Shown here: in pieces, positions 18,243 through 50,866 of the stretch
How the letters are laid out: every line of letters starts with the position of its first letter
Numbering within the stretch: position 1 is the first letter of the stretch
IMG/VR virus record: IMGVR_UViG_3300042516_005475
Location: 1 to 64,000 of that record
Length of the DNA: 64,000 bases
Reading direction: 5' to 3' (one strand)
Translations under genes and position numbers: made by a program
The notes under the pieces: generated by a model
Database searches by the model: none
What the model was told of the DNA's origin: nothing
The model's input: the letters and a program-made list of their open reading frames with translations, nothing else

Positions 18243-18959
18243 TTATTTATTTTTTTCAGGTTTCTTTTGCTCAGGTCTTGCCAAGGCTTCTAAGGCCTCA
18301 ATATCTTCCATGCCGAGATTTGGATCGTTAAAGATATTAGCATTAGGGTCCATTGAGTCTCCATCCGCATCAAGATAGAGCTTCATGATCTGAATACGTT
18401 CATTACGCTCACCGTATGTTTCAATAATAGGTGGTCGATCATCAGCATGAAAATAATTAGATTTTGGATTATCTCTATTTTCCATTGCAAACACCTTAAA
18501 GAGATTATCAATCTCAACTCGCATAAAAGGGTTAGCATCTCTCATACCATCTTCTTGAATATCAGGAGTCTTGGCTGCTCTTGTAATTGGGATATAGAAA
18601 ATAATATCAATATGTTTTAGAGCATCACGAACAACTGGGATACACTTCTTAATAAAGTCAAAATCAATATCTCCAACGTTGTGATGATAGGCCCACATAG
18701 AATACACGAGATTATCTAGCGGACAACGATCAAATACAATTCTATCACTTTTGCGAGTACCTTCTAGTTGCTTGACCATAAAGTCAAGAATAGCCTGTTG
18801 GGATTCTTTAGTAGTTTTTGAGCTATGGGTTAAACCTTTTTCAACTAAAACATCTCTATATGTCTTTTCTGGAGATTTATAGTTAGTCCACTCAGCAAGA
18901 AAATCTTTAATCAGAGTAGATTTGCCCATGCACTGGGCACCGGAAATGGCAATTCTCAT
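18243..18959 (-). CDS. P-loop nucleotide kinase (AAA_28/dNMP-kinase-like)
   Basis: ISGAQCMGKST, FDRCPLDNLVY, EDGMR. Confidence 0.75.
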   Translation of the reverse strand: MRIAISGAQCMGKSTLIKDFLAEWTNYKSPEKTYRDVLVEKGLTHSSKTTKESQQAILDFMVKQLEGTRKSDRIVFDRCPLDNLVYSMWAYHHNVGDIDFDFIKKCIPVVRDALKHIDIIFYIPITRAAKTPDIQEDGMRDANPFMRVEIDNLFKVFAMENRDNPKSNYFHADDRPPIIETYGERNERIQIMKLYLDADGDSMDPNANIFNDPNLGMEDIEALEALARPEQKKPEKNK

Positions 18960-18994
18960 GATACTATTATATAGTTCATGTATTGATAAATCTA

Positions 18995-19279
18995 CTAAAA
19001 GTTAAACATTGGTGACTCTCCCTGAAAGAACTTAACAGACCCAACATTCAATAGAGATTTAATCTTTTGTTTATCTTCCTGTGTAAGAAGTGTAAACATA
19101 TTTCTATATGTCTCGTCTGCTATATTAATGTTCTTTCGCTTGCACATACCACAGCTAGTCTTTCTAGCAGTACTAACAACACCCATGAAGCTTTGTATCT
19201 TAGTGCTTGTAAAGTGAGTATTGTTTGTATTAAGAAAATCGTAAAACTCGTTGAAGTTTTTAAAAATATGTTCGCTCAT
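18995..19279 (-). CDS. Hypothetical protein (CxxC)
   Basis: ORF with SCGMC; overlaps the upstream gene by ATGA. Confidence 0.55.
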   Translation of the reverse strand: MSEHIFKNFNEFYDFLNTNNTHFTSTKIQSFMGVVSTARKTSCGMCKRKNINIADETYRNMFTLLTQEDKQKIKSLLNVGSVKFFQGESPMFNF

Positions 19280-19623
19280 AGTTCTAGCTTTTTAATTAAT
19301 AAGTATGAAATATAGATACCATACCAATACAATGATACATAAAAAAAGTCTGGAATAATATTTATACTGAACAATAATACTGAAGACCAAAAAGAAATAC
19401 AAAACGGGCAAGCCAGCAGACTGGTAATAACATTTTTATATTCTGTTTCTAAAAACAAAGGGAAGTCAATGTTGTTTAAATTTCTTCGCCATCTCCTCAC
19501 AAGGCCTACTTGATCCATTGATACAAAAGAAAGAACATCTGGAATAAGACTAGTGTCCTTCCAGATGTAAATTAACAACGAAATAAAAATAACTAGACAT
19601 ACGCTTAAATCAAACAAGCTCAT
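19276..19623 (-). CDS. Hypothetical membrane protein
   Basis: Hydrophobic segments; CPFCISFW. Confidence 0.6.
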   Translation of the reverse strand: MSLFDLSVCLVIFISLLIYIWKDTSLIPDVLSFVSMDQVGLVRRWRRNLNNIDFPLFLETEYKNVITSLLACPFCISFWSSVLLFSINIIPDFFYVSLYWYGIYISYLLIKKLEL

Positions 19624-19660
19624 ATATCTAGTTATTTATATGTATCAGACTTTCAAGCCC

Positions 19661-20392
19661 TTAAACCTTGAGAGCTTTATTCCACAAGACCAATTGCAAT
19701 CGAGGACTAAAGTTAAAACCATGCTTCTTGCAAACCTCTGCTACCCAAGGAGCAACAGCATTATGCTCATCTCGAGAACCACAGCAAGGCATCAACCAAA
19801 TTTGATCTTCAGTAATACTAAAAGGTTTGATATACTTTTCGATAATCTCTTCAACATCACTATCTTTCTGCACAACAAACTTAAAGTAAGAGTAGATACT
19901 AGCGTGGTAAGCAATAACCTCTGGAACGTATCTCTTCTCTTCTGGATCTCCGTTAGTAGACAACTTAGGAGACACAGTAAAAGTAGCATTTATACTTTCC
20001 CAAAAACTTGAAGGATTAATCGTACAGTTAGTTTCAAAATCAATAACAGGATAGAAATCGAACTTTCTGAAAAAGGCTTCAATAAACTCAATCAAAGCCT
20101 TTTGCTGAATAAGAGGTTCACCACCAGTAATCTTAAGAACATGATTGCCTTTCAACTTATTTAGGTAATCATTATCTTCAAAGATCTTAAAGATCTCTTC
20201 AAAGGTTAGCTTATTCTTCTTAGACCAGCTAACATAGCTATCACAACCAAACGGAGAATCAGGAGACTTAAACCCGATGCAAGTCAAGTTGCACATTGCC
20301 AATCGCATGAAGATGCTTGGCTTACCAACCAAATGACCTTCACCTTCGATAGTTTCAAAGACAAAGTCATCAGAGAGAAATAATGAACTCAT
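19661..20392 (-). CDS. queE: 7-carboxy-7-deazaguanine synthase (radical SAM)
   Basis: FETIEGEG, FMRLAMCNLTC...CDS, ITGGEP, ETN, TVSPK, SPRLQ. Confidence 0.9.
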   Translation of the reverse strand: MSSLFLSDDFVFETIEGEGHLVGKPSIFMRLAMCNLTCIGFKSPDSPFGCDSYVSWSKKNKLTFEEIFKIFEDNDYLNKLKGNHVLKITGGEPLIQQKALIEFIEAFFRKFDFYPVIDFETNCTINPSSFWESINATFTVSPKLSTNGDPEEKRYVPEVIAYHASIYSYFKFVVQKDSDVEEIIEKYIKPFSITEDQIWLMPCCGSRDEHNAVAPWVAEVCKKHGFNFSPRLQLVLWNKALKV

Positions 20393-20422
20393 AATTTAAT
20401 GATATAGGAATCACTCTTAAGT

Positions 20423-21118
20423 TCAAGCCCATTTAGTACCAAAGTCCCAGGTACTAGGACGATTCTTACCACCGACTGGAACCCCTTGCGGAGGAGCATC
20501 AGTCTGCTTAGGGGTAACCCTAACTGGTTTATTTGTGTCATAAGCCAAGGCTTCAGTCTGCTTTTCAGACTTAGCAGGCGGAGCCCAGACAGGTTCAGCA
20601 GTCTTACCCTTCTTGCCTTTGCCTTTAGCAGGCGCAGCCTCAGCTTCATCAGCAACTTCTGCTGTAGATTCTTGAGCAGTTTCAGCAGAATAAATAGCAG
20701 AGTTCTTCTCATGCTCAAACACCTCAACAGAATGAGCTCGAACTCGACCGCTAGTCTTATGCTTCACGTAGCTATCTGCAGCATTAAAGCAATACTTTGC
20801 AAACAACTCAATTCCAACCCCTTCATCCATAACAACGATTGAGGCAGCTCCAGCCTTTTCAAGAGCCTCAAACTCTTTCATAGCAGGGTCATTCTTAGCA
20901 AGAACGAGAGTATGATCAAACTTCTCCTGCAAGAATCCCTTCAATTCGTCAAAGTCTCCGAAGTCAACAACCCAATTGTTGCCGTCAAGAGAATCAGAAG
21001 TAAACGTAAATTTACCAACCAATCGATAACCATGAATGAATCTGCAATGGGACTTTGCATTAGGCTGACGAAATGCAGCACTTCCGAGTTCAATAACCTT
21101 CGTGGAATAATATCTCAT
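20423..21118 (-). CDS. queD: 6-carboxy-tetrahydropterin synthase with a low-complexity C-terminal extension
   Basis: SHCRFIHGY, WVVDFG, FDHT, EHEKNSA; start trimmed to MRYYSTK. Confidence 0.85.
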   Translation of the reverse strand: MRYYSTKVIELGSAAFRQPNAKSHCRFIHGYRLVGKFTFTSDSLDGNNWVVDFGDFDELKGFLQEKFDHTLVLAKNDPAMKEFEALEKAGAASIVVMDEGVGIELFAKYCFNAADSYVKHKTSGRVRAHSVEVFEHEKNSAIYSAETAQESTAEVADEAEAAPAKGKGKKGKTAEPVWAPPAKSEKQTEALAYDTNKPVRVTPKQTDAPPQGVPVGGKNRPSTWDFGTKWA

Positions 21119-21157
21119 ACTCAGATATGTTATGAACATTTTTCCTAGAATCAAGCC

Positions 21158-21185
21158 TTGACTTGAACGAATTTGTCTCTATAAT
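21158..21185 (+). promoter_or_regulatory. Sigma70-type promoter of folE
   Basis: TTGACT-N16-TATAAT, with ATG 6 nt downstream. Confidence 0.7.
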
Positions 21186-21191
21186 AGGCGT

Positions 21192-21848
21192 ATGAATGAT
21201 GAGATTAGAGAGAAAGATTACCTCCTCCCGACTGCTAACAGTTCTATGGCTTTGACAGAAGAGCAAAAGCTTGCTATTATCGACAAGGGTGCTAAGGCAT
21301 ATGAGACTTTTTTGGATGCTCTTCGCATTGACTGGCGTAATGATCCGAATAGCGCAGGTACTCCTCGACGTGTTGCAAAGTCGTACGTGTTTGATTTAAT
21401 CTCTGGGTGCTATGAGGCTCCGCCGAAGATTACTTCTTTTCCTGCTGATGGTTATGATGGCATCGTCTCTCAGACGAATATTCCGTTGACTAGTATGTGT
21501 AGCCATCACCATTTGGCCTTTACTGGATTGGTGCATGTTGCTTATATTCCTAGTCTTGAAGGTCGTGTTATTGGCTTGAGTAAGCTCAATCGTATTGTTG
21601 AGTTTTATGGTCGTCGACCTCAGATTCAAGAAGGTTTGACGATGCAGATTCATAAGGCTATTAACGAGGTCTGCGAGCATAACAAGGGTGTTGCAGTTGT
21701 TGTTAAGGCTCAGCATACTTGTGCTTGTAATCGAGGTGTGAGACATCAAGGTTGTTATATGGTTACATCTAAGCTGTCTGGAGACTTCTATGATGACGAG
21801 AAGACTCGCAAGGAGTTTTACGACTTTATTAAAATGGCTGAAGAGTAG
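21192..21848 (+). CDS. folE: GTP cyclohydrolase I
   Basis: TPRRVAK, SMCSHH, GLSKLNRIV, RPQIQE, HTCACNRGV. Confidence 0.95.
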   Translation: MNDEIREKDYLLPTANSSMALTEEQKLAIIDKGAKAYETFLDALRIDWRNDPNSAGTPRRVAKSYVFDLISGCYEAPPKITSFPADGYDGIVSQTNIPLTSMCSHHHLAFTGLVHVAYIPSLEGRVIGLSKLNRIVEFYGRRPQIQEGLTMQIHKAINEVCEHNKGVAVVVKAQHTCACNRGVRHQGCYMVTSKLSGDFYDDEKTRKEFYDFIKMAEE

Positions 21849-21880
21849 TCTTTCTACCTGGCTGCAGTAAATAATACTGT

Positions 21881-22417: not shown

Positions 22418-22425
22418 ATAAAATT

Positions 22426-25039: not shown

Positions 25040-25043
25040 ACTA

Positions 25044-25577
25044 TTATTTATACAATCCATGCTTTACTTTCAGATCGTTAAAGTACTCTTCTGATAAAAA
25101 CGTTAATTTATACTTCTTTGCGAATGTTTTAATACTTCTAAATGAAAAATCTTTTTTGTTCTTTTTATCTATCTGAATCTTTAGCTTTTCTTTTAATTCC
25201 TGCATTTCTCCTGAATTAAACTTATCATCAATACATTCAAATGGAAGTTTATCACAGTAAAAAACAATAGGTAAAGTCTTGTTTAATCTACTAATTAATA
25301 ATTCTACCTCTTTATCTGATAAATTATCTTGAGTGTTAAAATAAAAAACATAAGCAAAATATGTTTTTTCTTTGTTATAGATTTCACAAACTGTCTTAAT
25401 AAAGTTGTGGTAGAAAAACTGTTTGTGGTGGTCTGTGTTTATTGAAAATAATTGACCGTAGTACTCAACAACATCGCTTATCGTCTGTGGTATAATTTCC
25501 TCTTCTAATAAGAATTTTAAATCTATTAACGAAATCGTGTTAAGATTAAGCTTCTTTATATATTTTTTCTTCTCCAC
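25044..25577 (-). CDS. Hypothetical protein
   Basis: 177-aa ORF. Confidence 0.55.
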   Translation of the reverse strand: MEKKKYIKKLNLNTISLIDLKFLLEEEIIPQTISDVVEYYGQLFSINTDHHKQFFYHNFIKTVCEIYNKEKTYFAYVFYFNTQDNLSDKEVELLISRLNKTLPIVFYCDKLPFECIDDKFNSGEMQELKEKLKIQIDKKNKKDFSFRSIKTFAKKYKLTFLSEEYFNDLKVKHGLYK

Positions 25578-25603
25578 AACGAGATTGTAACGGTGATTTA
25601 TTC

Positions 25604-26014
25604 TTATTCAACTGGTTTCTTAAGAAACTTTTTCAGTCTAATATTTATAATACCGTTGTAACAATTCGGGTCAAAAAGCACTCTGCTCTCCATCTGAAGT
25701 CTTGCTTCTTCGTACGCACAGTCCCACTTAGATTTAGCCAAGAATAGTATTTCTCTCTTGAAGCTTTCTTTTCCATATTTCTGAATATCTTTTAATAACT
25801 CTTCTGACGAGCCCCAGTACTCTTTCCAATCAGAAGATTGCTTTTCATGCCGCTTATTTTTCTTGCCTTTGAGTGGTGGTCTCTTTAGAATCTTCCAGAA
25901 GAACTTTTTACCAATGTAATATTTACCAGTTGGTATATGGGTAATTTTATAGACGAAGCCTACATAGTCGTCTAGGTTAATATCTTCTGCCAAATTTTGC
26001 CAACTTACATCCAC
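25604..26014 (-). CDS. GIY-YIG endonuclease (Seg-like)
   Basis: GFVYKIT...KYYIGKK...YWGSS...FKREIL...E...YNG. Confidence 0.85.
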   Translation of the reverse strand: MDVSWQNLAEDINLDDYVGFVYKITHIPTGKYYIGKKFFWKILKRPPLKGKKNKRHEKQSSDWKEYWGSSEELLKDIQKYGKESFKREILFLAKSKWDCAYEEARLQMESRVLFDPNCYNGIINIRLKKFLKKPVE

Positions 26015-26779: not shown

Positions 26780-26807
26780 TTGCATTCTGTTTTTTATTGT
26801 ATATAAT
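26780..26807 (+). promoter_or_regulatory. Sigma70-type promoter of the uvsY operon
   Basis: TTGCAT-N16-TATAAT, with ATG 6 nt downstream. Confidence 0.65.
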
Positions 26808-26813
26808 TCCTTT

Positions 26814-27227
26814 ATGAGTGTTGTTGCTGACGAAACGGTTCTCGAAAGATATAGTAAAGAACTAACTGATTTCTGTACTATTAATGAGTTTACTGTAAAA
26901 GAAAAACAACTTCAATTACCAGCATTTAAACACTTGTTCGTAGGCCGCCTTATTAGACATAAAATCTATGCTAGTAAGTTAAAGTCTCAAAAAGAAAAGC
27001 TCCGCTCTGAACTAGCCCACGCTGCTGCAAAGGCTGCTCCTGTAGCCCTAGACTTCTCTAAAGTGGAGAAAGCTATGGAAAGTAATGAGAAAATTGTGGA
27101 TCTTAACAATCAGATATACTATAATACACTCATAATAGAGTATCTCGAAAAAGTAGAAAAAGTTCTTTCATCAATAACATATGATATAAAGAACATCGTC
27201 GAGATAATGAAACTTGAGACTACATGA
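26814..27227 (+). CDS. uvsY: Recombination mediator, UvsY-like
   Basis: Helical 137-aa protein with EYLEKVEK...TYDIKNIVE; directly upstream of uvsW. Confidence 0.75.
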   Translation: MSVVADETVLERYSKELTDFCTINEFTVKEKQLQLPAFKHLFVGRLIRHKIYASKLKSQKEKLRSELAHAAAKAAPVALDFSKVEKAMESNEKIVDLNNQIYYNTLIIEYLEKVEKVLSSITYDIKNIVEIMKLETT

Positions 27228-28666
27228 CGGTTTTAACCATTGATGTTGATAACAGACGTAATACTGCTTCTTTAAGTGGAGACTTTAAAGCAGTTAGAGA
27301 ACACTTCTCTATAAAAAATAAGACTGCTGTCTTTGCTCGTAAACGGGGTTTCTTTGCACCGGAAAGAACATATGTTATTACACCAACTGGTAGAATAGAA
27401 CCTCATTTCCATACTGTTCTTCAAAAATACGCTCAACAAAGTGAAGACCCAACTGAAATTGTCTTAACAGAGAGCTTTAAAAAGTTATTCTCACCCAAAT
27501 TAAAGCTAGACTACCTTGATAAGAAATTACGTCTTGATTTACGTGATTATCAAACCGATGTAGTCCAAACTGCTTTAAAATCTGGTTTTGGTATTATCGA
27601 GTTAGCAACCGCGGGTGGCAAGACTCTCATAATGTCTTCTATCCTAGAAAACATTTATCATCAAAACCCAAACTTTAAATGTCTTCTCATTGTGCCTGAT
27701 TTAGGTCTTGTTAATCAATCGTTTAATGACTTTAAAGATTATAACGTTAGCTTTACTTATAGTACTTGGACAGGTAGTTCTGAGTTGGATTTAAGTACAA
27801 ATGTAATTATTGCTAATATGGGTATCTTACAATCTGAGATATCCGATACTGAATGGACGGAAAGCGTTGATCTTCTCATTGTTGACGAGGTTCACAAAGT
27901 TCGTAGAGGCAATAAGATCAACGACATTATTAAAAAGATCTATACTATTCATAAGTTTGGCTTTACTGGTACCTTGCCTGAAGAGGTATTAGATCAATGG
28001 AATATTTTTGCTAAGTTTGGAGATAGAATTTATTCCAAGATGTCTCACGAGCTAAAGTCTGAGAGTTATGTTACTCCAGCCAAGGTAACTGCTCTTGTTA
28101 TTAATTATAAAACTGGCCCTCAATTTGAAAGAACTAAAGACAGCACACCAGCTGATGAGTATATTGCTGAGCTGAAGTTCTTGCTAACAAACGATTTTCG
28201 TAATGGGGTTATCAATCACCTAGTTAACAAGTTTGACAATAACTCTCTTGTTCTTGTGGACTTAATTGACCACGGTCAAGCCATTTATGATAAAATTACT
28301 ACAAGCTCTACTACTAAAGAGGTTTATTTCATCAGAGGTGAAGTAGAAGTAGAAGAACGTAAGAGAGTTCAGACCTTAATGGAGAAGCAAACTAACGTTT
28401 GTGTAATTGCTATCTCTAAAATATTTTCGACAGGTATTAATATCAAAAATCTTCACTATTTAATCTTTGCTGGAGGTGGAAAAGCGAAGGTAAAGATAGT
28501 ACAATCAATAGGTCGTGGATTACGATTACACGAAGATAAGAAAGAGCTTATCATTATTGACATTGCTGATAACCTAAAGTATGGCATGCAGCACTATCAA
28601 AAAAGAAAGCAGCTTTACAATCAAGAGAAAATACCACATACCTTTACTAACTGCCATGAAAAATAA
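27224..28666 (+). CDS. uvsW: SF2 DNA helicase, UvsW-like
   Basis: LRDYQ, ATAGGKT, DEVH, GFTGT, STGINI, QSIGRGLR. Confidence 0.92.
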   Translation: MTVLTIDVDNRRNTASLSGDFKAVREHFSIKNKTAVFARKRGFFAPERTYVITPTGRIEPHFHTVLQKYAQQSEDPTEIVLTESFKKLFSPKLKLDYLDKKLRLDLRDYQTDVVQTALKSGFGIIELATAGGKTLIMSSILENIYHQNPNFKCLLIVPDLGLVNQSFNDFKDYNVSFTYSTWTGSSELDLSTNVIIANMGILQSEISDTEWTESVDLLIVDEVHKVRRGNKINDIIKKIYTIHKFGFTGTLPEEVLDQWNIFAKFGDRIYSKMSHELKSESYVTPAKVTALVINYKTGPQFERTKDSTPADEYIAELKFLLTNDFRNGVINHLVNKFDNNSLVLVDLIDHGQAIYDKITTSSTTKEVYFIRGEVEVEERKRVQTLMEKQTNVCVIAISKIFSTGINIKNLHYLIFAGGGKAKVKIVQSIGRGLRLHEDKKELIIIDIADNLKYGMQHYQKRKQLYNQEKIPHTFTNCHEK

Positions 28667-29162
28667 TTTACCAAAAATTAAGAAACCTGAAACCTTTGTG
28701 ATGGATCCAACATCCAAGCCACCCAAAGAACAATTTTACGTTGATCCTAAAGAGTTTTATAGGCAGATAAAAGACTATTATAAGAGCGGAGAAATAAACG
28801 ATTATTTGGCAGAATCTATCTATAAGATTGCAAAAGGTCTTTCTTACGCACCTAATTTTATTAATTATTCTTATCGAGACGACATGGTTGGTGATGCTGT
28901 CGTAAAGATGTATACAGCCCTAAAGAATAAGAAGTTTAACGTTAAGACCAAGGATAAAAACGGCTACAATTATAACCCGTTTAGTTACTTTACAACCATT
29001 GCATTCCACGCATTTATCACTAGAATTAAGAAAGAAAAGAAAGAGAAAGACACTATAGCCCTTTATCAAGAAGCGCAGTTTAGAGAGGCTATGCAATCCT
29101 TACCTAACGGTGATTGTGTTTATATCGATCCTGACAGGGAAGATAATTATAACGAAGCCTAG
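28656..29162 (+). CDS. gp55: Late transcription sigma factor, gp55-like
   Basis: IAKGLSYAPNFINYSYRDDMVGDA, NPFSYFTTIAFHAFITRIKKEK. Confidence 0.92.
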   Translation: MKNNLPKIKKPETFVMDPTSKPPKEQFYVDPKEFYRQIKDYYKSGEINDYLAESIYKIAKGLSYAPNFINYSYRDDMVGDAVVKMYTALKNKKFNVKTKDKNGYNYNPFSYFTTIAFHAFITRIKKEKKEKDTIALYQEAQFREAMQSLPNGDCVYIDPDREDNYNEA

Positions 29163-29163
29163 T

Positions 29164-32012: not shown

Positions 32013-33275
32013 ATGATACGTCCTGGTTTTAACGTTCTTGGTCGCCCAACTATTGGAACTCCTTCTGTTAATACAAATAACACTATTGTTGAGTATGAAA
32101 ATAAACCACCTAGAAAAGATCTAGTACAAGCAGAGACCCAACTTCCAAAGAGTGTGAACTTCTTGGCAGATCATTCTGGTTGTGGTTTTTGGCGATTGTT
32201 TTGGCCAGCTGATCAACTCAATTCAAGAATCGAATCTGTTGTTATGAATTCATGTCAGATGATTCATGACGAAATGTTCTTTAGTACCTTAAAGACTGTT
32301 CGTATTCAAAGACAGGCTACTGAGAATCAATACCGCTATGTAACTTATCTTGAGAAGATGAGAAACAAGTTTGGTTTCAATCTCGCATACGAAATCGATG
32401 ACATTATGTATTACTCAGACATTCCTGAGTATAATAAATTCAAGCCTGGATTTAGTGACCCTAAGATTGCTGAGTTCTGCACAAAGATCATGCAGACTTG
32501 CGATGAGATTACAACCACTAATAAGTTCATTGGAGATTATTACGCTGACAAGACTGGTAACAAGAATGTAACTGTTATCCCTAACTATCCACCTCGTTGG
32601 TGGATAGGTAACCACTATGATGAGAAGAAGATTAGCCAGAACTTCGATAAGAACCGTAAGAAGCCTCGTATCCTTTATGCAGGCTCTGGTGCTCATATTG
32701 ACGTTGAAGGTCGCTGCAAGTATAAGGACGACTTCTATCATATTAACGAACTTGTACGTAAAACAGTAAACGAGTTCCAGTGGGTATTCTTTGGAGCCTT
32801 GCCAATCCCTCTTGTTGATCTTTATAAGTCTGGTAAGATTGAATTCCATAATTGGACTAAGCTGTATGACTTCCCTGAGAAGATTGCTAGCCTGAATGCT
32901 CAGCTCATGATTGCTCCATTGCAAGACAATGTCTTTAATCAAGGCAAGAGTGATATTAAACTCATTGAGGCTGGGGCATTCGGTACTCCTGTTATTTGTC
33001 AAGACTTGGTAACCTACAAGGAGGCAGACTTTAAATTTAAGACTGGAGATGAACTTGGAGATCAGATTAGAAAAGTCTTGAAGCACAAAGACGACTACAT
33101 GAAGTCTTCCAGAAAGCATAGAGCTCGCTCTGAAAAGCGCTTCTTAGAGAATCCAGAGAATCTGGGCAAGTGGAAAGAAATGTACCACTTCAAGTATGGT
33201 GTAGCAGAAAGAAAGCTCCTGAATGAATTTAATGGAATAGCTTGCGTTCCTGCGAGTGTTAGCGTATCATCATGA
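32013..33275 (+). CDS. GT-B-fold glycosyltransferase-like protein
   Basis: GCGFWR, YEIDD, VIPNY, IAPLQDNVFNQGKSDIKLIEAGAFGTPVI. Confidence 0.75.
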   Translation: MIRPGFNVLGRPTIGTPSVNTNNTIVEYENKPPRKDLVQAETQLPKSVNFLADHSGCGFWRLFWPADQLNSRIESVVMNSCQMIHDEMFFSTLKTVRIQRQATENQYRYVTYLEKMRNKFGFNLAYEIDDIMYYSDIPEYNKFKPGFSDPKIAEFCTKIMQTCDEITTTNKFIGDYYADKTGNKNVTVIPNYPPRWWIGNHYDEKKISQNFDKNRKKPRILYAGSGAHIDVEGRCKYKDDFYHINELVRKTVNEFQWVFFGALPIPLVDLYKSGKIEFHNWTKLYDFPEKIASLNAQLMIAPLQDNVFNQGKSDIKLIEAGAFGTPVICQDLVTYKEADFKFKTGDELGDQIRKVLKHKDDYMKSSRKHRARSEKRFLENPENLGKWKEMYHFKYGVAERKLLNEFNGIACVPASVSVSS

Positions 33276-33279
33276 TACG

Positions 33280-35886: not shown

Positions 35887-35912
35887 AATCTTGAAAAAAG
35901 CCTTTATATATT

Positions 35913-36299
35913 ATGAGTATGGAAAAGAAAAACCTAATTGTATTCGTTGATAACGTTGGTCGTAACATCTATGGTGAGCTTGTTTCACGTGAAGAAAAGT
36001 ATTTCTTCGTTAAGAACCCAGCCATCATAAATATTGTGCCGAACCCTAGCTCTGGCCAGCTACAGGTCCAGGTGTTGCCTTACTTCTTTGGAGAGTTTCT
36101 AAAGAACAAGGAAGAGCCTAAGACTGTATGGAAGTTTAGTGCCAAGAGTGTGGTGGAGGCAACAGAACTCGACTTGGATGATAAGTTGGTCAGCCAGTAC
36201 GAGAGAATGTTTAGCAACTCCAAGATCATTACTCCTGAGCGCCAGGTAACTCCTGCTGCTGCGGGTACTGCAGCTAAAGTTGTTAAACTATTTGAATAA
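35913..36299 (+). CDS. Hypothetical protein (small beta-rich fold)
   Basis: ORF between gp43 and uvsX. Confidence 0.6.
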   Translation: MSMEKKNLIVFVDNVGRNIYGELVSREEKYFFVKNPAIINIVPNPSSGQLQVQVLPYFFGEFLKNKEEPKTVWKFSAKSVVEATELDLDDKLVSQYERMFSNSKIITPERQVTPAAAGTAAKVVKLFE

Positions 36300-36326
36300 C
36301 AAATAGAAAACAATATAATAGAAAAT

Positions 36327-37472
36327 ATGAGTAAAGAAACGCAAAAAGCAATTGATAACGTATTTGAAGCATTAAACAAAATTAATCCTGAAGCAAACTA
36401 TCTTTCAGAACAAACGCTTTCTGAAGTTAGTGAATTTATCGATACAGGCTGTTATGTACTTAACGCCATTATGTCAGGGTCTCTCCTAACTGGAGGTATT
36501 CCAAAGGGCCGAATCACAGGGTTTATTGGACCATCTCAGACAGGTAAGACCTATATTATCAACAAGATTCTCGGCAATGCTCAGAAGAAGGGAATGATCC
36601 CAGTCATTTTCGATACTGAAATTGCTGTTGAGAGTCGTGGTGCAGAAAATGTTGGTCTTGATCCTAAAAAGACAAAGCATGTACCTGTTGATACTGTTGA
36701 AAATTGCCGTAATCAGATCTTTGCTCTACTCGATGGTATTGAAAAGAATCCTAGTTTAAAGGGTAAGTTTATTATTAGCATTGATTCGCTAGGTAACTTG
36801 TCTGCACAGAAAGAACTCAATGACGCTGAGGCTGGTAAGTCAGCTGGCGATATGGGTTTGAGAGCCAAGCAATTGAAGTCAATGCTCAGAACTTTGACTT
36901 ACAAGGCTGCTCGTACTGGAACTACTATTCTATTCAGTAACCATACTTACGATGACCCTGCTGCTATGTATCCGACGCTTGTAAAGAAGCAGTCTGGTGG
37001 CTCTGGTCCAATTTACATGGCTAGTTTGCTTGTGCAATTAGCCAGCCGTTCTGAAAAGCAGGACGATAAAAACGAAAACGATAAGATGCTCCCTGAGGCT
37101 AAAAACTATAGTGGTGTTACTCTCAGAGCTCTTACTGTAAAAAACAGATTTGTGCCTCCTTATCTTGAAGCAGAAATGTATCTGAACTTCCTTACTGGCC
37201 TCGATAAGTATGCTGGCATTCTCGGTCTTGCTGTTAACCATGGTGTTATTATTCAAACCGGAAGCACGTATACTTTGCCAGATGGAACCAAGTTAGGTTA
37301 CTATAGCAAATTTAAGGAGGACAAAAATTTCTGGGACAATAAAATCATCCCTGAAGTAGAAAAGATAATTAAGGAAAAATACAAATATGGTAACTCCAGC
37401 ACAAGTGCTAACATCGAAATCGATGAAGAGTTTCCAGATGAGGGAGGGGGTGTTGAAGATGGCCAAGACTAA
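36327..37472 (+). CDS. uvsX: RecA-like recombinase, UvsX
   Basis: GPSQTGKT, FDTE, IDSLGNL, DMGLRAK, NHTY, SGGSG, KNRF. Confidence 0.92.
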   Translation: MSKETQKAIDNVFEALNKINPEANYLSEQTLSEVSEFIDTGCYVLNAIMSGSLLTGGIPKGRITGFIGPSQTGKTYIINKILGNAQKKGMIPVIFDTEIAVESRGAENVGLDPKKTKHVPVDTVENCRNQIFALLDGIEKNPSLKGKFIISIDSLGNLSAQKELNDAEAGKSAGDMGLRAKQLKSMLRTLTYKAARTGTTILFSNHTYDDPAAMYPTLVKKQSGGSGPIYMASLLVQLASRSEKQDDKNENDKMLPEAKNYSGVTLRALTVKNRFVPPYLEAEMYLNFLTGLDKYAGILGLAVNHGVIIQTGSTYTLPDGTKLGYYSKFKEDKNFWDNKIIPEVEKIIKEKYKYGNSSTSANIEIDEEFPDEGGGVEDGQD

Positions 37473-37543: not shown

Positions 37544-37579
37544 AAGGGCAACGATATAAAACTTGTTGCCCTTAATTTT
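37544..37579 (+). terminator. Hairpin, probable terminator after uvsX, overlapping the queC -35 box
   Basis: aagggcaacga...ttgttgccctt followed by aatttt. Confidence 0.5.
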
Positions 37580-37594
37580 GTTTTCATATATACT
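37566..37594 (+). promoter_or_regulatory. Sigma70-type promoter of the queC operon
   Basis: TTGCCC-N17-TATACT, with ATG 37601 6 nt downstream. Confidence 0.6.
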
Positions 37595-37600
37595 GTGTGT

Positions 37601-38311
37601 ATGAGTAAGTGTGTAATTCCTGTTAGTGGTGGCATTGATTCAACGGTCATGCTTTATGATGCTGCTGCATCTAAGACCTATTCAGATATCTTCGCGATTA
37701 GTTTTTATTACGGTCAGCGTCATGCTACGAATGAGCTGGCTTGTGCAACTAAATCTGTTAATACTTTAAAGGAAAAGTACCCAGAGATTAATATCTATCA
37801 CCGAAACATTGATCTAAGCTTCTTTGGTGAGATTGCTATTAGCTCTTCAATTACCAATAATGATATTGCTGTTGCTCAGACTAAAGATGTTCTTGGTGAT
37901 CCACAGCCGGTTAATTATGTACCGTTTCGTAATCTAATGATGCTTTCTATTCTCTGCTCTTTTGCAGAGGCTCATGGTGCTCGAGATGTTTACTATGGTA
38001 GTGCTCTTGTTGATTCTCAGGCTGGGTATTGGGACTCTAGTAATGAATTCTACTTGAATCTCGCTTCTGTTATTGGTCTCAATCGTAAGAATAAGATTTC
38101 TATTATTACACCGTTGATTAAGCTTGATAAGAAAGATATTATCAAGTTAGGTGATGAGCGTGGGGTTGACTTTAAGAGTACCTGGACTTGTTATGAAGGT
38201 AAAGAACAAGCCTGTGGATATTGTCCAGCCTGCTCTAGTCGAATCAAAGGCTTTATGGATTATATGATGGTTGACCCTATTGAATACAGCCGAAAGATTA
38301 AATTTATCTAA
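37601..38311 (+). CDS. queC: 7-cyano-7-deazaguanine synthase
   Basis: SGGIDS, YGQRH, YVPFRN, TWTCY...CGYCPAC. Confidence 0.95.
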   Translation: MSKCVIPVSGGIDSTVMLYDAAASKTYSDIFAISFYYGQRHATNELACATKSVNTLKEKYPEINIYHRNIDLSFFGEIAISSSITNNDIAVAQTKDVLGDPQPVNYVPFRNLMMLSILCSFAEAHGARDVYYGSALVDSQAGYWDSSNEFYLNLASVIGLNRKNKISIITPLIKLDKKDIIKLGDERGVDFKSTWTCYEGKEQACGYCPACSSRIKGFMDYMMVDPIEYSRKIKFI

Positions 38312-38312
38312 T

Positions 38313-38963
38313 ATGTGTGCAATATTTGGTTCTGCTTCTAAAGAAAAATTTGTTAAACTATACGAGTTAAATAAACCTAGAGGTGTATCTGCTTCCAGTT
38401 ATTTAACTATAACTGATAATGGTTGGATTGATTGTTACAAGAGCGCTGGTGCATTTGATGAAAATAGATTAAAATCTAGTAAGTTATATCTTGGTCATTG
38501 CCAGGCTCCAACCACAGTTAATCAGAGCTTTAACCCTGAACTAGCTCACCCATTTTATTGGAATCGCTTTTATGTCGCTCACAATGGTATTATTACCAAT
38601 GTAGAAGAGCTTTGTGAAAAGTACTTTATTAAGCTTGAAGATATTAAAGTTGACTCTAGTATCATACCTGCTTTGATAGGTTACTTCTATCATAAAAAGA
38701 ACTCTGACCAACTTCAAGACATTATTAAGCGTGTTGCTGAGTTGCTCAAAGGTACTTTTGCTTGTTATATTGTAGATGAAAGATCTAATCGAATATTTCT
38801 TATTCGATCAGGTTCTACCTTGTTCTATGATCAAGATAGCAATATCTCCTCTACTAAGTTTGATAATGCTATTCCTTTTGAAGAAGGTAGGGTAGGTGAA
38901 ATTGTTAAAAACAAGATTATATATCACAATACCTTTATTTGTAACTCCCCATTTTTTATATGA
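38313..38963 (+). CDS. Class II (Ntn) glutamine amidotransferase
   Basis: M-C-AIFG start (Cys1 nucleophile), GHCQAPT, AHPF, HNGII, VDS. Confidence 0.8.
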   Translation: MCAIFGSASKEKFVKLYELNKPRGVSASSYLTITDNGWIDCYKSAGAFDENRLKSSKLYLGHCQAPTTVNQSFNPELAHPFYWNRFYVAHNGIITNVEELCEKYFIKLEDIKVDSSIIPALIGYFYHKKNSDQLQDIIKRVAELLKGTFACYIVDERSNRIFLIRSGSTLFYDQDSNISSTKFDNAIPFEEGRVGEIVKNKIIYHNTFICNSPFFI

Positions 38964-42860: not shown

Positions 42861-42896
42861 AAAAAACTAAAAATAGAAATATAATAAAAACGAAAT

Positions 42897-43781
42897 ATGA
42901 GTACATTTAATAAATCAATGTTTGAGTCGATTAAGGAAGAGTTGAACAAGTCCAAGGCTAAGTCCGGTCTTCGTGATATTCTTCGTACACCTCCTGGTCA
43001 TACTTACACTGTGAGGCTTATTCCCAACATCCAGGATCCTAAGAAGACCTTTTTCCATTACTACAACTTTGGTTGGGAGTCTTATGCTACTGGTGAGTAT
43101 GTTCAGTTTATCTCTCCTTCTACTTGGGGTGAGCGCGATCCGATTGCTGAAGGTCGTTTGAAGTGCTTGAAGCATGGTTCTGCTGAAGATAAGGCAAAGG
43201 CTGAGAAGCTCTTGCGTCGCGAAAATTGGTTGGTTAACGTTTATGTTATCAACGATACCAATGAACCTGATAATAACGGCAAGGTGAAGATGCTCCGTTA
43301 TGGTCGTCAGATTCAGAAGATCATTGACGAGGCTATGAACGGTGAAGATTCAGATCAGTTCGGTGCTCGTATCTTTGACTTGAGTGGTACTGGTTGCTCG
43401 TTCAAGATCAAGGCTGAAAAGCAAGGCGACTTCCCGACGTTTGTCTCTTCTCGATTCTCATCTCCTGGTGAGGTGCCAGCTCTTGGTAGCGATAACAAGA
43501 AGATTGAGGCTATTTATAACTCAGTCCATGCCCTCGATACTGTGTTCCGTGTTCAGTCTTACGATGAGCTCAAGGCTGCTTTCGAGAAGCATTTCTTGTG
43601 TGAGACTCCTGCAGCTCCTGCTCCTAAGGCTGAGGCTGCTACTGATGATAGTCCGTTCGTTGAGTCTAAGAAGTCTGCTGTTCGTACGTTGCCTAAGCCA
43701 GTTGAGCCTGAGGCTGCGGATGAGGATGAAGATGGATTGGATGATGCTAAGGTTGCTGAACTTCTCAAGGGTTTGAGTTAA
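42897..43781 (+). CDS. gp32: Single-stranded DNA-binding protein, gp32-like
   Basis: VRLIP, GERDPI, NVYVIND..PDNNGKVK..YG, IFD...G, acidic tail. Confidence 0.9.
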   Translation: MSTFNKSMFESIKEELNKSKAKSGLRDILRTPPGHTYTVRLIPNIQDPKKTFFHYYNFGWESYATGEYVQFISPSTWGERDPIAEGRLKCLKHGSAEDKAKAEKLLRRENWLVNVYVINDTNEPDNNGKVKMLRYGRQIQKIIDEAMNGEDSDQFGARIFDLSGTGCSFKIKAEKQGDFPTFVSSRFSSPGEVPALGSDNKKIEAIYNSVHALDTVFRVQSYDELKAAFEKHFLCETPAAPAPKAEAATDDSPFVESKKSAVRTLPKPVEPEAADEDEDGLDDAKVAELLKGLS

Positions 43782-43798
43782 GATAGTTAGTTGTTGCG

Positions 43799-43831: not shown

Positions 43832-43865
43832 GTGGCTATCTCTAATCAATCTCATAAAATATTGT

Positions 43866-45469: not shown

Positions 45470-45693
45470 CTACGGCTCTACAAGAAGAGCCAGACAGCGA
45501 ATTTAATAGAAACTGTAAAATGACTGTCGATTTTCTGGATCAGGTTCTGTCTAACTATATGGTTATTGGTTATGATTTAAACAATGTTCCATTTGTTATT
45601 TGCAATAACAGAACTCAGAAAGACGCTGATGCTCTTAAAACTCTCATAACAAAAGTTATGATGGGACAAGACTTGAACATCAAAAAAATCTAG
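45430..45693 (+). CDS. Hypothetical protein
   Basis: ORF in the operon. Confidence 0.55.
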   Translation: MDEKSRKELQKRLTTALQEEPDSEFNRNCKMTVDFLDQVLSNYMVIGYDLNNVPFVICNNRTQKDADALKTLITKVMMGQDLNIKKI

Positions 45694-45701
45694 TATATAA
45701 T
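45673..45701 (+). promoter_or_regulatory. Sigma70-type promoter
   Basis: TTGAAC-N17-TATAAT, with ATG 6 nt downstream. Confidence 0.65.
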
Positions 45702-45707
45702 TTTATT

Positions 45708-46580
45708 ATGCATACACCTGGTGTGGCCATCTTCGGTGGGGGCTATGTAGGCTCCAACCTCTTTAAAGAACTACAAAAATCATACAAGCTTGAATCTTTT
45801 TTAATTGATAGACAGAAGCTTGATTATACAAACGAAAGAGCTCTTAGAGAATTTTTCGAAGCCTGTGAGCCAGACTACGTTGTTAACTGTGTCGGCTTTA
45901 CTGGCCGACCTAATGTTGATGCCTGTGAACTCAACAAAGAGGAAACATACAAGCTAAACGTTCAATTGCCTATCTTGATGGCTAAGCTTTGTGAAGAGTA
46001 TAGAGCAAGCTTGTATCATATTTCTTCTGGTTGTATCTATTCAGGTTATGAATTTCCGTATAGCGAAACTCACATACCTGACTTTGGGGCTTTTAGTGAT
46101 AAAAGTTCTTTCTATTCTAAGACAAAGCACGCTGCTGAATTGGCATTGGCTCAGTTTAACAATGTAAAGATTTTTCGTATTAGAATGCCGTTTTGTGGTG
46201 AACACACAGATCGCAACTATCTATTGAAGATTCGTAAGTATAGCAACCTTCTAAACGAAGTTAATTCAAAGACTCATATCCCTGGATTCGTTGAAATCTT
46301 GAAAAAGCTTCTTGAAACCAATAATGAGAGAACTCCTAAGTACACTCTCAATGTTTGTAACCCTTACCCTCTCAGAACAGATCAAGTTGTAGAGATTTAC
46401 CGCAAGCATAATTTTGATAACCCTAGTTGGAAGTTTATTAGCTATGATGAATTGCCAATTAAGGCTAATCGTTCAAATTGTGTTATGGATTGTACAAAGC
46501 TGAAGGACTTTGGTTTTGAATTCGAAACAGAAGAAGAGGCTATCACCAAGAGTATCATTTCCTTGAGAGACAATGCTTAA
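45708..46580 (+). CDS. NDP-sugar epimerase/reductase (RmlD or NRS/ER-like, rhamnose synthesis)
   Basis: GGGYVG Rossmann motif, GFTGRPNVDACE, SSGCIY, YSKTK, RIRMP. Confidence 0.8.
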   Translation: MHTPGVAIFGGGYVGSNLFKELQKSYKLESFLIDRQKLDYTNERALREFFEACEPDYVVNCVGFTGRPNVDACELNKEETYKLNVQLPILMAKLCEEYRASLYHISSGCIYSGYEFPYSETHIPDFGAFSDKSSFYSKTKHAAELALAQFNNVKIFRIRMPFCGEHTDRNYLLKIRKYSNLLNEVNSKTHIPGFVEILKKLLETNNERTPKYTLNVCNPYPLRTDQVVEIYRKHNFDNPSWKFISYDELPIKANRSNCVMDCTKLKDFGFEFETEEEAITKSIISLRDNA

Positions 46581-47767: not shown

Positions 47768-47768
47768 T

Positions 47769-49427: not shown

Positions 49428-49431
49428 AGCT

Positions 49432-49443
49432 ATAAATATTTAT
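49432..49443. promoter_or_regulatory. Palindromic bidirectional late promoter ATAAATATTTAT
   Basis: Two overlapping TAAATA boxes in a 19-bp divergent gap. Confidence 0.65.
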
Positions 49444-49446
49444 GTT

Positions 49447-49818: not shown

Positions 49819-49819
49819 T

Positions 49820-50191
49820 ATGGTTAAGAAGCTTCTTCTATCTTTAACAGTCACGATGAGCATTAGCTCTGGCGTTTCATATTTTTTAACTAGCTTTGAA
49901 ATACCTTTTATCAAGACGTTTATTCTTGCAACAGTTGTGCAATTCTTATTCTTCTATTTCTACAACACCTATAGCCAGGCAAAATTTAACAAGTTTGCTG
50001 TTGAGCAGTTGTCTGAAACTGAAACTCAATTTGAACAGGCTGGAGCAGATGTTGTATGTGCCAATTGTAAGAAAGAGGTTTTTGCTCCTATTGAATTGCC
50101 TGAGCCTAACAACTTTACTTGCCCGCATTGTGGTTCAGAGAACTCTATTTACCTAAATATCGAGACTGCAGTTACCACTCGACCTGTATGA
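49820..50191 (+). CDS. Membrane-anchored Zn-ribbon protein
   Basis: Two hydrophobic helices, then CANC...CPHC. Confidence 0.6.
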   Translation: MVKKLLLSLTVTMSISSGVSYFLTSFEIPFIKTFILATVVQFLFFYFYNTYSQAKFNKFAVEQLSETETQFEQAGADVVCANCKKEVFAPIELPEPNNFTCPHCGSENSIYLNIETAVTTRPV

Positions 50192-50592
50192 TTAAAATGG
50201 ATGAAAAAGAGTCTGGGTTAAAACCTGTTAAACTCGAAGAAAAGAAAGTAAATTACTCTGATATTGTTGAGCAACTCAAACAATACTTTTTAAGCCGCAG
50301 AGGTTTAGATAAAGGAGAGTTTCTCAGCGCAGTTGAGCTTTCCAAGTTTCACAATGCTGATTTCTTCAAAGTAGAACCTCAGGTCTACTCAGCCAATTTA
50401 CTCAAGCTTGTTTTTGATGAAATTCTCAACGAAGAGAAAAACGTTGAAAAGAGAGAATATAAAAAAGCTGTTTTGGCTACTATGATGAATTCTCTAAACG
50501 AAATGTTTCCGGAAAAGTCTAAAGACAAAGGTCGTATTTTTTGCCTATTTGCAGCCTACACAATTGGAATATTCGAACTCTTTGACGAATAA
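50188..50592 (+). CDS. Hypothetical protein
   Basis: ATGA overlap with the previous gene. Confidence 0.55.
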   Translation: MIKMDEKESGLKPVKLEEKKVNYSDIVEQLKQYFLSRRGLDKGEFLSAVELSKFHNADFFKVEPQVYSANLLKLVFDEILNEEKNVEKREYKKAVLATMMNSLNEMFPEKSKDKGRIFCLFAAYTIGIFELFDE

Positions 50593-50597
50593 AAAGC

Positions 50598-50626
50598 TTG
50601 ACGAAACTTAACTTTCCCTCTATACT
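50598..50626 (+). promoter_or_regulatory. Sigma70-type promoter
   Basis: TTGACG-N17-TATACT, with GTG 6 nt downstream. Confidence 0.7.
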
Positions 50627-50632
50627 AAGAGT

Positions 50633-50866
50633 GTGAAGAAAAATACTACTAAGAACATTTCCACCGAAATCATCGACAGCAATGAGAAGCTTTCTCGTTG
50701 GCTTGCTCTTATGGAAGGTATTGAGATTATTGAACAGAAGGCTACCGAGCTCAAGGTTGACAAGGCAGAGTTTGATAGCCTGTTGAAGCCATTGGCTTTG
50801 CAGAAGTATATTAACGAGCGTTATAATTCTATTAAGCTCGAGCTCGATTACCAAAGTGGTTGTTAA
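50633..50866 (+). CDS. Hypothetical early protein
   Basis: 77 aa, behind a consensus-like promoter. Confidence 0.6.
   Translation: MKKNTTKNISTEIIDSNEKLSRWLALMEGIEIIEQKATELKVDKAEFDSLLKPLALQKYINERYNSIKLELDYQSGC

Follow-up and report, generated by a model that had tools for sequence, protein, structure and literature searches.

Sigma70-type promoter sequences abut the start codons of early-type genes in an uncultured T4-like lake phage and predict leaderless mRNAs

Results

Genes and predicted promoter sites of the locus

The window analyzed here is a stretch of 64,000 nucleotides (positions 1 to 64,000 of the IMG/VR record IMGVR_UViG_3300042516_005475) from an uncultured 230-kb T4-like lake phage with 36% G+C. 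The region of interest within it (18957 to 50635; 43 genes) carries genes of replication, recombination and nucleotide metabolism, among them folE, queC, queD, queE, uvsX, uvsY, a kinase, the DNA polymerase gene (gp43), gp32 and a gp55-like late sigma factor gene. A sequence-only reading of this DNA had proposed that at seven of these genes a TATAAT, TATACT or TATCAT hexamer is followed by exactly 6 nt and then by the start codon, and that six of the seven have a TTG-led -35 box at 16-17 nt. Inspection of the sequence confirmed this observation at every one of the seven sites. The start codon is ATG at all of them except 50633, which is GTG, and all hexamers have 0-1 mismatch to TATAAT.

At folE (21158-21194, plus strand), the -35 box TTGACT (21158-63) is followed by 16 nt, the -10 box TATAAT (21180-85), 6 nt and the ATG at 21192; the product matches the Pfam family GTP_cyclohydroI. 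Relatives keep the hexamers while the spacer changes (aggcgt, aggtgt, agacgt), and a 77% relative has TTGAAA-16-TATAAT-7-ATG. The divergent queD (PTPS) promoter (21116-21154, minus strand) consists of TTGATT (21149-54), 16 nt, TAACAT, 8 nt and the ATG at 21118, and in one relative the same gene has TTGACT-16-TATAAT-6-ATG. The queE site (20390-20426, minus strand) reads TTGAAC (20421-26), 16 nt, TATCAT (20399-404), 6 nt and ATG 20392. The kinase gene (AAA_28/dNK-like; 18957-18971, minus strand) has TATAAT (18966-71) 6 nt before ATG 18959 but no recognizable -35 box; its Pfam profile starts at residue 2, so that no downstream start is possible, and a 90% relative has TATATT at 7 nt.

The uvsY site (26780-26816, plus strand) comprises TTGCAT, 16 nt, TATAAT (26802-07), 6 nt and ATG 26814. 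In most relatives, down to 44% identity, the hexamer lies at 6 nt with unrelated spacers, whereas it lies at 7 nt in the 80% relatives and at 8 nt in the 43% one. The spacer of this phage is all pyrimidine, so the first purine available for initiation is the A of the ATG. At queC (37544-37603, plus strand), an intrinsic terminator hairpin with an 11-bp stem (37544-37573 plus a T-run) lies immediately upstream of the promoter and overlaps it; the promoter reads TTGCCC (37566-71), 17 nt, TATACT (37589-94), 6 nt and ATG 37601. In 10 of 15 distinct relatives (97% to 48% identity), the queC hexamer is exactly 6 nt from the ATG, with nine different spacer sequences, and the Pfam QueC profile begins at residue 3. 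The RmlD-like reductase gene (45673-45710, plus strand) has TTGAAC, 17 nt, TATAAT (45696-701), 6 nt and ATG 45708, while a gene of 77 amino acids (50598-50635, plus strand) has TTGACG, 17 nt, TATACT (50621-26), 6 nt and GTG 50633. At the latter gene, an 86% relative has TTGACA-17-TATCAT-6-GTG, so that hexamer and spacer differ but the geometry and the GTG are kept.

Further sites of the same kind were found in or near the region. At 25575-25611 (minus strand), TTGAAT, 16 nt, TACAAT and 6 nt precede GTG 25577, and a 56% relative has TATAAT-6-GTG. At 35883-35921 (plus strand), TTGAAA, 18 nt, TATATT and 6 nt precede ATG 35919, the ATG at 35913 being not conserved. At uvsX (36292-36329, plus strand), TTGAAT, 16 nt, TATAAT and 7 nt precede ATG 36327; the four distinct 93-98% relatives have 6 nt, and more distant relatives have other hexamers at 6 nt, a late motif at 5 nt, or a stop/start overlap. 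Additional sites lie at 12849 (minus strand), 15719 (minus strand; 7 nt) and 49820 (5 nt). The gp43 promoter (33242-33282, plus strand) consists of TTGCGT, 17 nt, TATCAT, 9 nt and ATG 33280, a predicted near-leaderless start, and gp32 (42880-42899, plus strand) has TATAAT 11 nt before ATG 42897, corresponding to a short leader of about 5 nt, although some 50-56% relatives have 6-7 nt.

The spacing rule also corrected over-long starts in the open reading frame list, as the sequence-only reading had claimed. The start of queC moves from 37595 to 37601, that of queD from 21154 to 21118, that of gp43 from 33256 (GTG) to 33280, and 49787 moves to 49820; in two of these promoter cases, including queD, the supposed TTG start is actually the -35 box. 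The start of the amidotransferase gene moves from 38271 to 38313, but there the true start is a stop/start junction (TAA-T-ATG; 38309-38315, plus strand) that couples the gene to queC.

Positional statistics

In-frame internal start codons were used as decoys, of which 1.3% have such a hexamer at exactly 6 nt and 0.13% also have a TTG-led -35 box. Among the 43 genes of the region (78 candidate starts), 9 genes with a hexamer at exactly 6 nt were observed against 1.04 expected (Poisson P = 1.6e-6), and 8 that also have a -35 box at 16-18 nt against 0.1 expected (P = 2e-13). Genome-wide, 13 sites with a -35 box were observed against 0.55 expected (P = 5e-14). Sites with a -10 box only were, as a class, at about the decoy rate genome-wide (14 genes). 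Sigma70-like sites as such were not over-represented (66 against 61 in shuffled sequence); the signal lies wholly in their position relative to starts. In accordance with this, the distances of 155 full promoter-like sites to gene starts gave 10 sites at 6 nt, 6 at 7 nt, 5 at 10 nt and 2 at 11 nt, over a background of about 0.3 per bin. An unbiased positional k-mer count ranked TATAAT at 6 nt (8 observed, 0.19 expected) as the top motif outside the late class.

Conservation in relatives

The geometry is conserved in uncultured relatives down to about 45% protein identity, while the 6-nt spacer changes freely, as seen for the orthologues of queC, uvsY, uvsX, folE, queD, 50633, 25577 and gp32. 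The same peak appeared independently in three divergence tiers of relatives, with 12, 11 and 8 sites at 6 nt and 5, 6 and 0 sites at 7 nt, respectively, and flat decoys. A footprint over 29 orthologous pairs showed higher identity at the -35 box, the -10 box, position -1 and the start codon than in the spacers.

Translation signals and the late promoter class

No Shine-Dalgarno enrichment was detected in any gene class: GGAG occurred in 3.2% of upstream regions against a background of 3.9%, and most relatives were likewise at background. Genes not abutted by a promoter mostly start at stop/start junctions, and the hexamer motif was absent before the 88 coupled internal genes. The start codons of the 67 promoter-abutted genes were 57 ATG, 10 GTG and 0 TTG, while other genes had 18 TTG of 170 (Fisher P = 0.002). 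This matches the ATG/GTG-only rule shown experimentally for mycobacterial leaderless translation (PMC4633059). A pyrimidine at -1 and weak 5' structure, which might have supported a transcription start on the start codon, occur at all gene starts of this genome and are not specific.

The late promoter class shows the same design. TAAATA followed by 5 nt (equivalent to ATAAAT plus 6 nt) was found at 49 genes against 1 of 1568 decoys; these genes, with TAAATA at 5-6 nt, include portal, sheath, tube and terminase genes. A search by tblastn with gp55 of the Pelagibacter phage HTVC008M identified a homologue at 28581-29162 (plus strand; 38% identity, E = 2.5e-14), in the same synteny (uvsY, helicase, gp55) as in HTVC008M and S-PM2; this gp55-like late sigma factor is the presumed reader of the late promoters. 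By contrast, the sigma70-type sites precede nucleotide-metabolism and recombination genes.

Discussion

The evidence is best explained by genuine -35/-10 promoters, read by the primary sigma factor of the host. The phage encodes no sigma70-family domain other than the divergent gp55. With the last base of the -10 hexamer 6 nt (sometimes 7) upstream of an ATG or GTG, and with the hexamer at -12 to -7 as in the established geometry, RNA polymerase should initiate with the purine of the start codon. The mRNA should then have no 5' leader and no ribosome-binding site, and is expected to be bound directly by the ribosome with initiator tRNA at its 5'-terminal AUG or GUG. In this view, downstream cistrons without a promoter of their own would mostly be translated by re-initiation at overlapping or abutting stop/start junctions (ATGA, TAATG, TAA-N-ATG). 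The geometry, its statistical excess, its conservation, the lack of Shine-Dalgarno signals and the restriction to ATG and GTG were demonstrated by the sequence analyses, whereas promoter activity, initiation by the holoenzyme at the exact +1 position, the mode of ribosome binding and the early/middle timing (from gene functions only) are inferences. The only public RNA runs holding this phage gave a handful of read-length contigs at depth 2-3 and no 5' ends, and were too thin to map a transcription start. Likewise, the host, expected to be a lineage rich in leaderless translation, could not be identified. Leaderlessness also appears to be the mode and not a rule, because promoters of the same type lie 9-11 nt from the start at gp43, gp32 and five other genes genome-wide, and a distinct, early-looking TTGAGGTTCCTG-type promoter class in the small-gene region has leaders of roughly 4-19 nt. 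A probability of about 0.78 was assigned to this explanation. The interpretation given in the sequence-only reading, namely sigma70-type promoters positioned for leaderless mRNA as a second class of the same design, is supported in each part that could be checked.

An alternative is that the promoters are real but abut the start codons as a by-product of extreme genome compaction, the genes being translated mainly from longer read-through transcripts in which the AT-rich promoter DNA serves as an unstructured leader, and the 5'-AUG transcripts being minor or poorly translated. Intergenic spacers are only about 28-55 nt, so that read-through transcripts from upstream promoters may also carry these genes; divergent promoters overlap; and all starts, promoter-abutted or not, lie in A/T-rich, weakly structured surroundings. 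In addition, the phage PAU, which lacks Shine-Dalgarno sites and infects a Bacteroidetes-type host, uses A-rich leaders of about 10-25 nt rather than abutting promoters, showing that translation from leaders without Shine-Dalgarno sites is possible. However, compaction alone predicts a broad distribution of short distances, not a spike at exactly 6-7 nt kept across relatives with free spacer sequence, nor does it predict the exclusion of TTG starts, and at queC the terminator blocks read-through directly in front of the promoter. This alternative is considered unlikely.

Even less likely is that the hexamer is an AT-rich, non-Shine-Dalgarno translation-initiation signal resembling the upstream motif of Bacteroidetes-type (GeneMarkS-2 group B) genomes. 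The lack of Shine-Dalgarno signals, the non-SD motifs described at short distance from starts in the FCB group (PMC6028130), and the prediction that a T4-like environmental genome carrying queuosine genes infects marine Bacteroidetes (PMC7198788) would agree with it. Group B motifs, however, occur before all genes, including internal ones, while here the motif is missing before the 88 coupled genes and comes with a TTG-led -35 box at 16-18 nt about 60-fold (region) to 24-fold (genome) more often than expected from decoys. Moreover, the TATAAT-like and TAAATA motifs partition by gene function as temporal promoter classes do, and the late motif matches the T4 late-promoter consensus in a genome with a gp55 homologue. 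The sites do not follow the Bacteroidetes promoter consensus (TTTG at -33, TAnnTTTG at -7): by eye, none of the inspected sites with a hexamer at 6 nt has TTTG at hexamer positions 5-8, and the base before the TTG is T in only about a quarter. Chance occurrence of TAnnnT hexamers in AT-rich DNA, selected because they fit, would be in line with the frequency of loose sigma70-like matches and of sites with a -10 box only, but it is refuted by the distance statistics and by the independent replication in relatives.

A broader reading, possible but rather less likely than not, is that a whole, widespread, uncultured aquatic clade of T4-like phages runs a fully Shine-Dalgarno-independent expression programme, in which nearly every cistron is either 5'-terminal on its own transcript or re-initiated at a stop/start junction, the 5'-terminal ones starting both from host-sigma promoters and from gp55-dependent late promoters that initiate on the start codon. 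This would imply an abundant freshwater host lineage outside the known Actinobacteria/Deinococcota set, possibly Bacteroidota or another SD-poor group, whose ribosomes translate leaderless mRNA as a main route. It would also be the first case of gp55-directed transcription beginning on the initiator codon.

The architecture inferred here is known from other lineages but has not been reported for T4-like phages. In the leaderless genes of Actinobacteria and Deinococcus-Thermus (GeneMarkS-2 group C; "TA-like signal about 10 bp upstream"; "-10 region adjacent to ORFs"), a Pribnow box likewise lies 6-8 nt from an ATG or GTG start and no Shine-Dalgarno site is present (PMC6028130; PMC3160421; PMC12340547; PMC4633059), the 6-8 nt distance being reported for Mycobacterium tuberculosis (PMC6028130) and for Deinococcus-Thermus (PMC12340547). 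In those genomes, however, leadered and internal genes use Shine-Dalgarno sites, whereas here no gene class shows one; the present genome also has a well-conserved TTG -35 box and lacks the actinophage marker WhiB. In the Thermus phages phiYS40 and Lalka27a, most transcripts, across temporal classes, were shown experimentally to begin with the A or G of the initiator codon (bioRxiv 10.64898/2026.04.20.719267, citing Sevostyanova 2007). These phages are unrelated to T4-like phages, have thermophilic Deinococcota hosts, and have late promoters of another consensus (TAGGGT in Lalka) instead of a gp55-type TATAAATA motif; in the present phage, leaderlessness is inferred from sequence.

The cultured T4-like phages nearest in sequence, HTVC008M and Synechococcus phage S-PM2 (Kyanoviridae), share core genes and synteny (uvsY, helicase, gp55, gp43, uvsX, gp20), with identities of about 29-36% for uvsX, gp43 and gp20, as well as sigma70-like early promoters and ATAAATA late promoters. 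They instead use leaders and Shine-Dalgarno sites, which were found at 46 and 24% of ORFs, respectively, against a background of 3-8%, and their late promoters lie 15-35 nt from the start. HTVC008M has only two sigma70-type sites at 6 nt in 49 kb and S-PM2 none in 40 kb. T4 middle promoters combine a MotA box at -30, in place of a -35 element, with a sigma70 -10 box; compared by eye, the -35 boxes of the present phage read TTGAnn and TTGCnn and not a MotA box. The cI mRNA of phage lambda, transcribed from PRM, is another phage message that starts on its AUG (see the references of PMC12340547), but it represents a single regulatory gene in an otherwise Shine-Dalgarno-using genome and not a genome-wide design.

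Identity of the phage and its promoter-abutted genes

The 64-kb window is the first part of a complete virus record of 230,047 bp, which was found in many lake-water metagenomes and has a G+C content of about 36%. The record represents a distant T4-like myovirus: its DNA polymerase (gp43), UvsX and portal protein (gp20) are only 29-36% identical to those of Pelagibacter phage HTVC008M, cyanomyoviruses, Caulobacter phage Cr30 and Sinorhizobium phages, and no near nucleotide match was found in the collection of deposited phages. Pfam searches confirmed the genes named in the sequence-only reading, namely GTP cyclohydrolase I (folE), QueC, a QueE-like radical-SAM protein, PTPS/QueD, UvsY, a RecA-like UvsX, gp32, an AAA_28/dNK-like kinase and an RmlD-like reductase.

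The sequence-only reading had described seven sites in which a -10 hexamer is followed by exactly 6 nt and then the start codon, and this observation held at every one of them. TATAAT, TATACT or TATCAT, six bases and then ATG were read at folE (21192), uvsY (26814), queC (37601), the reductase (45708), queE (20392, minus strand) and the kinase (18959, minus strand), with GTG as the start codon at 50633. Six of the sites have a TTG-led -35 hexamer at 16-17 nt, while the kinase site has none. At six of the seven genes the start is the first possible start of the open frame, and for the kinase, QueC and the reductase the Pfam profile begins at residues 2-10, so that no downstream start is possible.

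Position of the hexamers relative to gene starts

Loose sigma70-like matches were not over-represented in this AT-rich DNA (66 against 61 in shuffled sequence), and the test was therefore positional. A set of 251 genes was built by our own codon-usage scoring, and 1,568 in-frame internal start codons served as decoys; of the genes, 82 remained unclassified, many of them with the same motifs at 8-12 nt. A -10-like hexamer at exactly 6 nt occurred at 1.3% of the decoys, and at 0.13% when a TTG-led -35 was also required. Within the range of the seven sites (18957-50635), 9 of 43 genes had the hexamer (1.04 expected, P 1.6e-6) and eight had it together with a -35 (0.1 expected, P 2e-13), while genome-wide 13 genes had both (0.55 expected). 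Among 155 full promoter-like sites in the genome, the distance to the next gene start was 6 nt in 10 and 7 nt in 6, with a minor group at 10-11 nt (7 sites) and a flat background of about 0.3 per position. An unbiased count of positional 6-mers before first starts ranked the late motif first and TATAAT at 6 nt next (8 observed, 0.19 expected), and no Shine-Dalgarno-like word appeared.

The claim that the rule also corrects over-long starts held as well. Standard callers mis-place starts in this clade, and ORF lists and the public gene calls take either the TTG of a -35 box or an upstream in-frame TTG/GTG as the start codon, as seen at window positions 21154 (QueD), 38271 and 49787 and at uvsY in the relative L103; the TTG of the -35 box itself is taken at QueD, 49787 and L103 uvsY. 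The true starts lie 6-42 nt downstream, at a promoter-abutted or stop-coupled ATG. A rule of hexamer plus 6 nt fixes this for thousands of metagenomic contigs.

Conservation in uncultured relatives

Searches with UvsX, the UvsW-like helicase and the 5'-3' exonuclease recovered about 95 related uncultured contigs at 26-100% identity. At queC, the hexamer lies exactly 6 nt before the ATG in 10 of 15 distinct relatives, from 97% down to 48% protein identity, and the six spacer bases are unrelated from one relative to the next. The 6-nt geometry of uvsY is kept in most relatives, down to 44% identity, there with a GTG start, and the two GTG-start genes (50633 and 25577) keep GTG at 6 nt while hexamer and spacer change. 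In contrast, uvsX has 7 nt here but 6 nt in its 93-98% relatives, and further relatives carry other hexamers at 6 nt, a late motif at 5 nt, or a stop/start overlap with the upstream gene. In a relative whose FolE is 77% identical, the 55-nt spacer between the divergent QueD and folE genes holds two full promoters, each 6-7 nt from its ATG.

Counting all full promoter-like sites in the flanks of the relatives gave the same spike at 6-7 nt in three separate divergence tiers, with flat decoys. Furthermore, a footprint over 29 orthologous pairs showed higher identity at the -35 box, the -10 box, position -1 and the start codon than in the two spacers. Two further features were discarded as support after controls, since a pyrimidine at -1 is common to all starts in this genome and weak structure in the first 25-35 nt is shared by the coupled genes.

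A genome without Shine-Dalgarno signals

The words GGAG, GAGG and AGGA were no more frequent upstream of genes than elsewhere. Besides the sigma70-type class, a late class was found in which TAAATA lies 5-6 nt before the start (that is, ATAAAT plus 6 nt, the same geometry) at 49 genes, against 1 of the 1,568 decoys. This class precedes portal, sheath, tube and terminase genes, and a gp55 homologue lies at 28581-29162, in the same synteny as in HTVC008M. Another 88 genes start within -20 to +15 nt of the upstream stop codon, with peaks at -4, -1 and +1. The promoter-abutted genes use 57 ATG, 10 GTG and no TTG, whereas other genes include 18 TTG of 170; ATG or GTG at the 5' end, but not TTG, is exactly what supports leaderless translation in mycobacteria (PMC4633059).

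At queC, a terminator with an 11-bp stem and a T-run overlaps the -35 box, so that read-through from uvsX should stop just before the promoter. Terminator hairpins that carry the -35 box of the next promoter in their 3' arm or loop, forming compact terminator-promoter units, were seen at window 37544-37594 and upstream of uvsX in the relatives L031-L039. A different arrangement was seen upstream of gp32 in the 40-47% relatives (L040, L034, L059 and others), where the gene is preceded by long C/A-rich, G-poor leaders, one of which fills the 48 nt shown upstream of the ATG with AACT repeats. This looks like an SD-independent translational enhancer, in contrast to the abutting promoter in closer relatives.

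Comparison with other phages

The nearest cultured relatives, HTVC008M and S-PM2, have Shine-Dalgarno sites (46% and 24% of ORFs, respectively, against 3-8% background), and their late promoters lie 15-35 nt from the start. Phage PAU, whose real host is a Sphingobacterium, has no Shine-Dalgarno sites but has A-rich leaders of about 10-25 nt. Thus, neither T4-likeness nor an SD-free host alone produces the abutting geometry. Among the uncultured relatives, a subgroup of uvsX relatives (L023, L024, L026 and L028; about 30-34% G+C) showed clear Shine-Dalgarno enrichment (20-38% against 2-4% background); three of the four have no hexamer at 6 nt and L028 has one such site, which suggests a host switch with a matching change of expression signals.

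The design matches the leaderless genes of Actinobacteria and Deinococcus-Thermus (PMC3160421, PMC6028130, PMC12340547) and, among phages, the Thermus phages phiYS40 and Lalka27a, in which most transcripts were shown to begin with the A or G of the initiator codon (as cited in bioRxiv 10.64898/2026.04.20.719267). No paper describing leaderless transcripts in T4-like phages or cyanophages was found, the only hits being citations of the gene finder GeneMarkS-2. What distinguishes the present phage from the known cases is its T4-like lineage, a gp55 late class with the same geometry, and the complete lack of SD sites even at internal genes.

Interpretation and significance

The sequence-only reading had interpreted the sites as sigma70-type promoters positioned for leaderless mRNA, and the present evidence supports this interpretation, although the transcription starts themselves are inferred from sequence. 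A -10 hexamer occupies -12 to -7, so a 6-nt spacer puts +1 on the first base of the start codon, and GeneMarkS-2 reports the Pribnow box 6-8 nt from leaderless starts in M. tuberculosis (PMC6028130). The analysis itself demonstrated the geometry, its excess over chance, its conservation, the absence of SD signals and the restriction to ATG and GTG; in contrast, it is by inference that host holoenzyme would initiate with ATP (or GTP at the GTG genes) on the start codon, that the 5'-terminal AUG or GUG would be bound directly by the ribosome, and that downstream cistrons would re-initiate at the stop/start junctions. Four metatranscriptome runs contained fragments of this phage or a relative, but only as scattered, read-length contigs of 150-260 nt at depth 2-3, and no 5' ends were seen in either of the two 5.9-kb stretches examined.

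The geometry also has exceptions. The promoters of gp43 (9 nt), gp32 (11 nt), QueD (8 nt) and a few others should give leaders of 1-5 nt. In addition, a third promoter-like class has an extended -35 (TTGAGGTTCCTG or variants) and a TATACT- or CATAAT-like -10, and lies upstream of many small ORFs, mostly in the small-gene region at 147-194 kb of the genome (e.g., 154548, 180660, 187703, 189448, 192168 and 193538), with variants elsewhere, including window 33242 (gp43). It is followed by leaders of roughly 4-19 nt, several of which share a conserved A-rich stretch ending in gaaaataagat before the ATG. These transcripts would be leadered and may be the immediate-early class.

T4-like phages are the textbook case of leadered translation under Shine-Dalgarno and RegA control, and a sister lineage with no leaders would remove that layer of control and need other ways to regulate. 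The architecture is a host-dependent trait. The subgroup of relatives with Shine-Dalgarno sites lacks it, so it could serve as a marker for the translation system of an unknown, abundant lake bacterium. It also offers synthetic biology compact promoter/start modules only 37 nt long.

Search for the host

Searches for the host lineage gave no identification. A scan of 185,579 species genomes with uvsX found only an unrelated RecA-like hit, and a search of a protein atlas gave viral clusters. The FolE homologues at 70-94% identity all lie on metagenomic contigs, and the two whose genomic context was read are phage-like. Marker searches were negative for WhiB (actinophages), psbA (cyanophages), ribosomal S21 (S21-bearing phages), S1, IF1, IF3, sigma70 regions 2 and 4, and TGT. 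As judged by eye at the inspected sites with a hexamer at 6 nt, the promoters are not of the Bacteroidetes TAnnTTTG type, although a T4-like environmental genome with queuosine genes has been predicted to infect marine Bacteroidetes (PMC7198788). Related phage contigs encode, next to folE, a 65-aa protein that hits Pfam Hc1 (histone H1-like), and this may be a weak hint to the host lineage.

Other features of the genome

A 7-deazaguanine cluster is located at window 18243-21848 and 37601-38963, and comprises folE, QueD, QueE and QueC plus an Ntn-type glutamine amidotransferase whose start (ATG 38313, Met-Cys...) is coupled to queC. No TGT/DpdA-family hit was found in the genome with Pfam PF01702, so that either DNA or tRNA could be the target. 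Outside the window (whole genome 142843-143222, and 108.6-164.9 kb; locus L069), the phage encodes a one-piece tmRNA (Rfam RF00023, 113 bits) and 24 tRNA genes in several clusters, and ARAGORN read an unusually long tag peptide ending in AVA. Also outside the window, at genome 116443-120564, an ORF of 1,373 amino acids is full of collagen-like Gly-X-Y repeats (GIPGISG...) and is probably a fibre protein.
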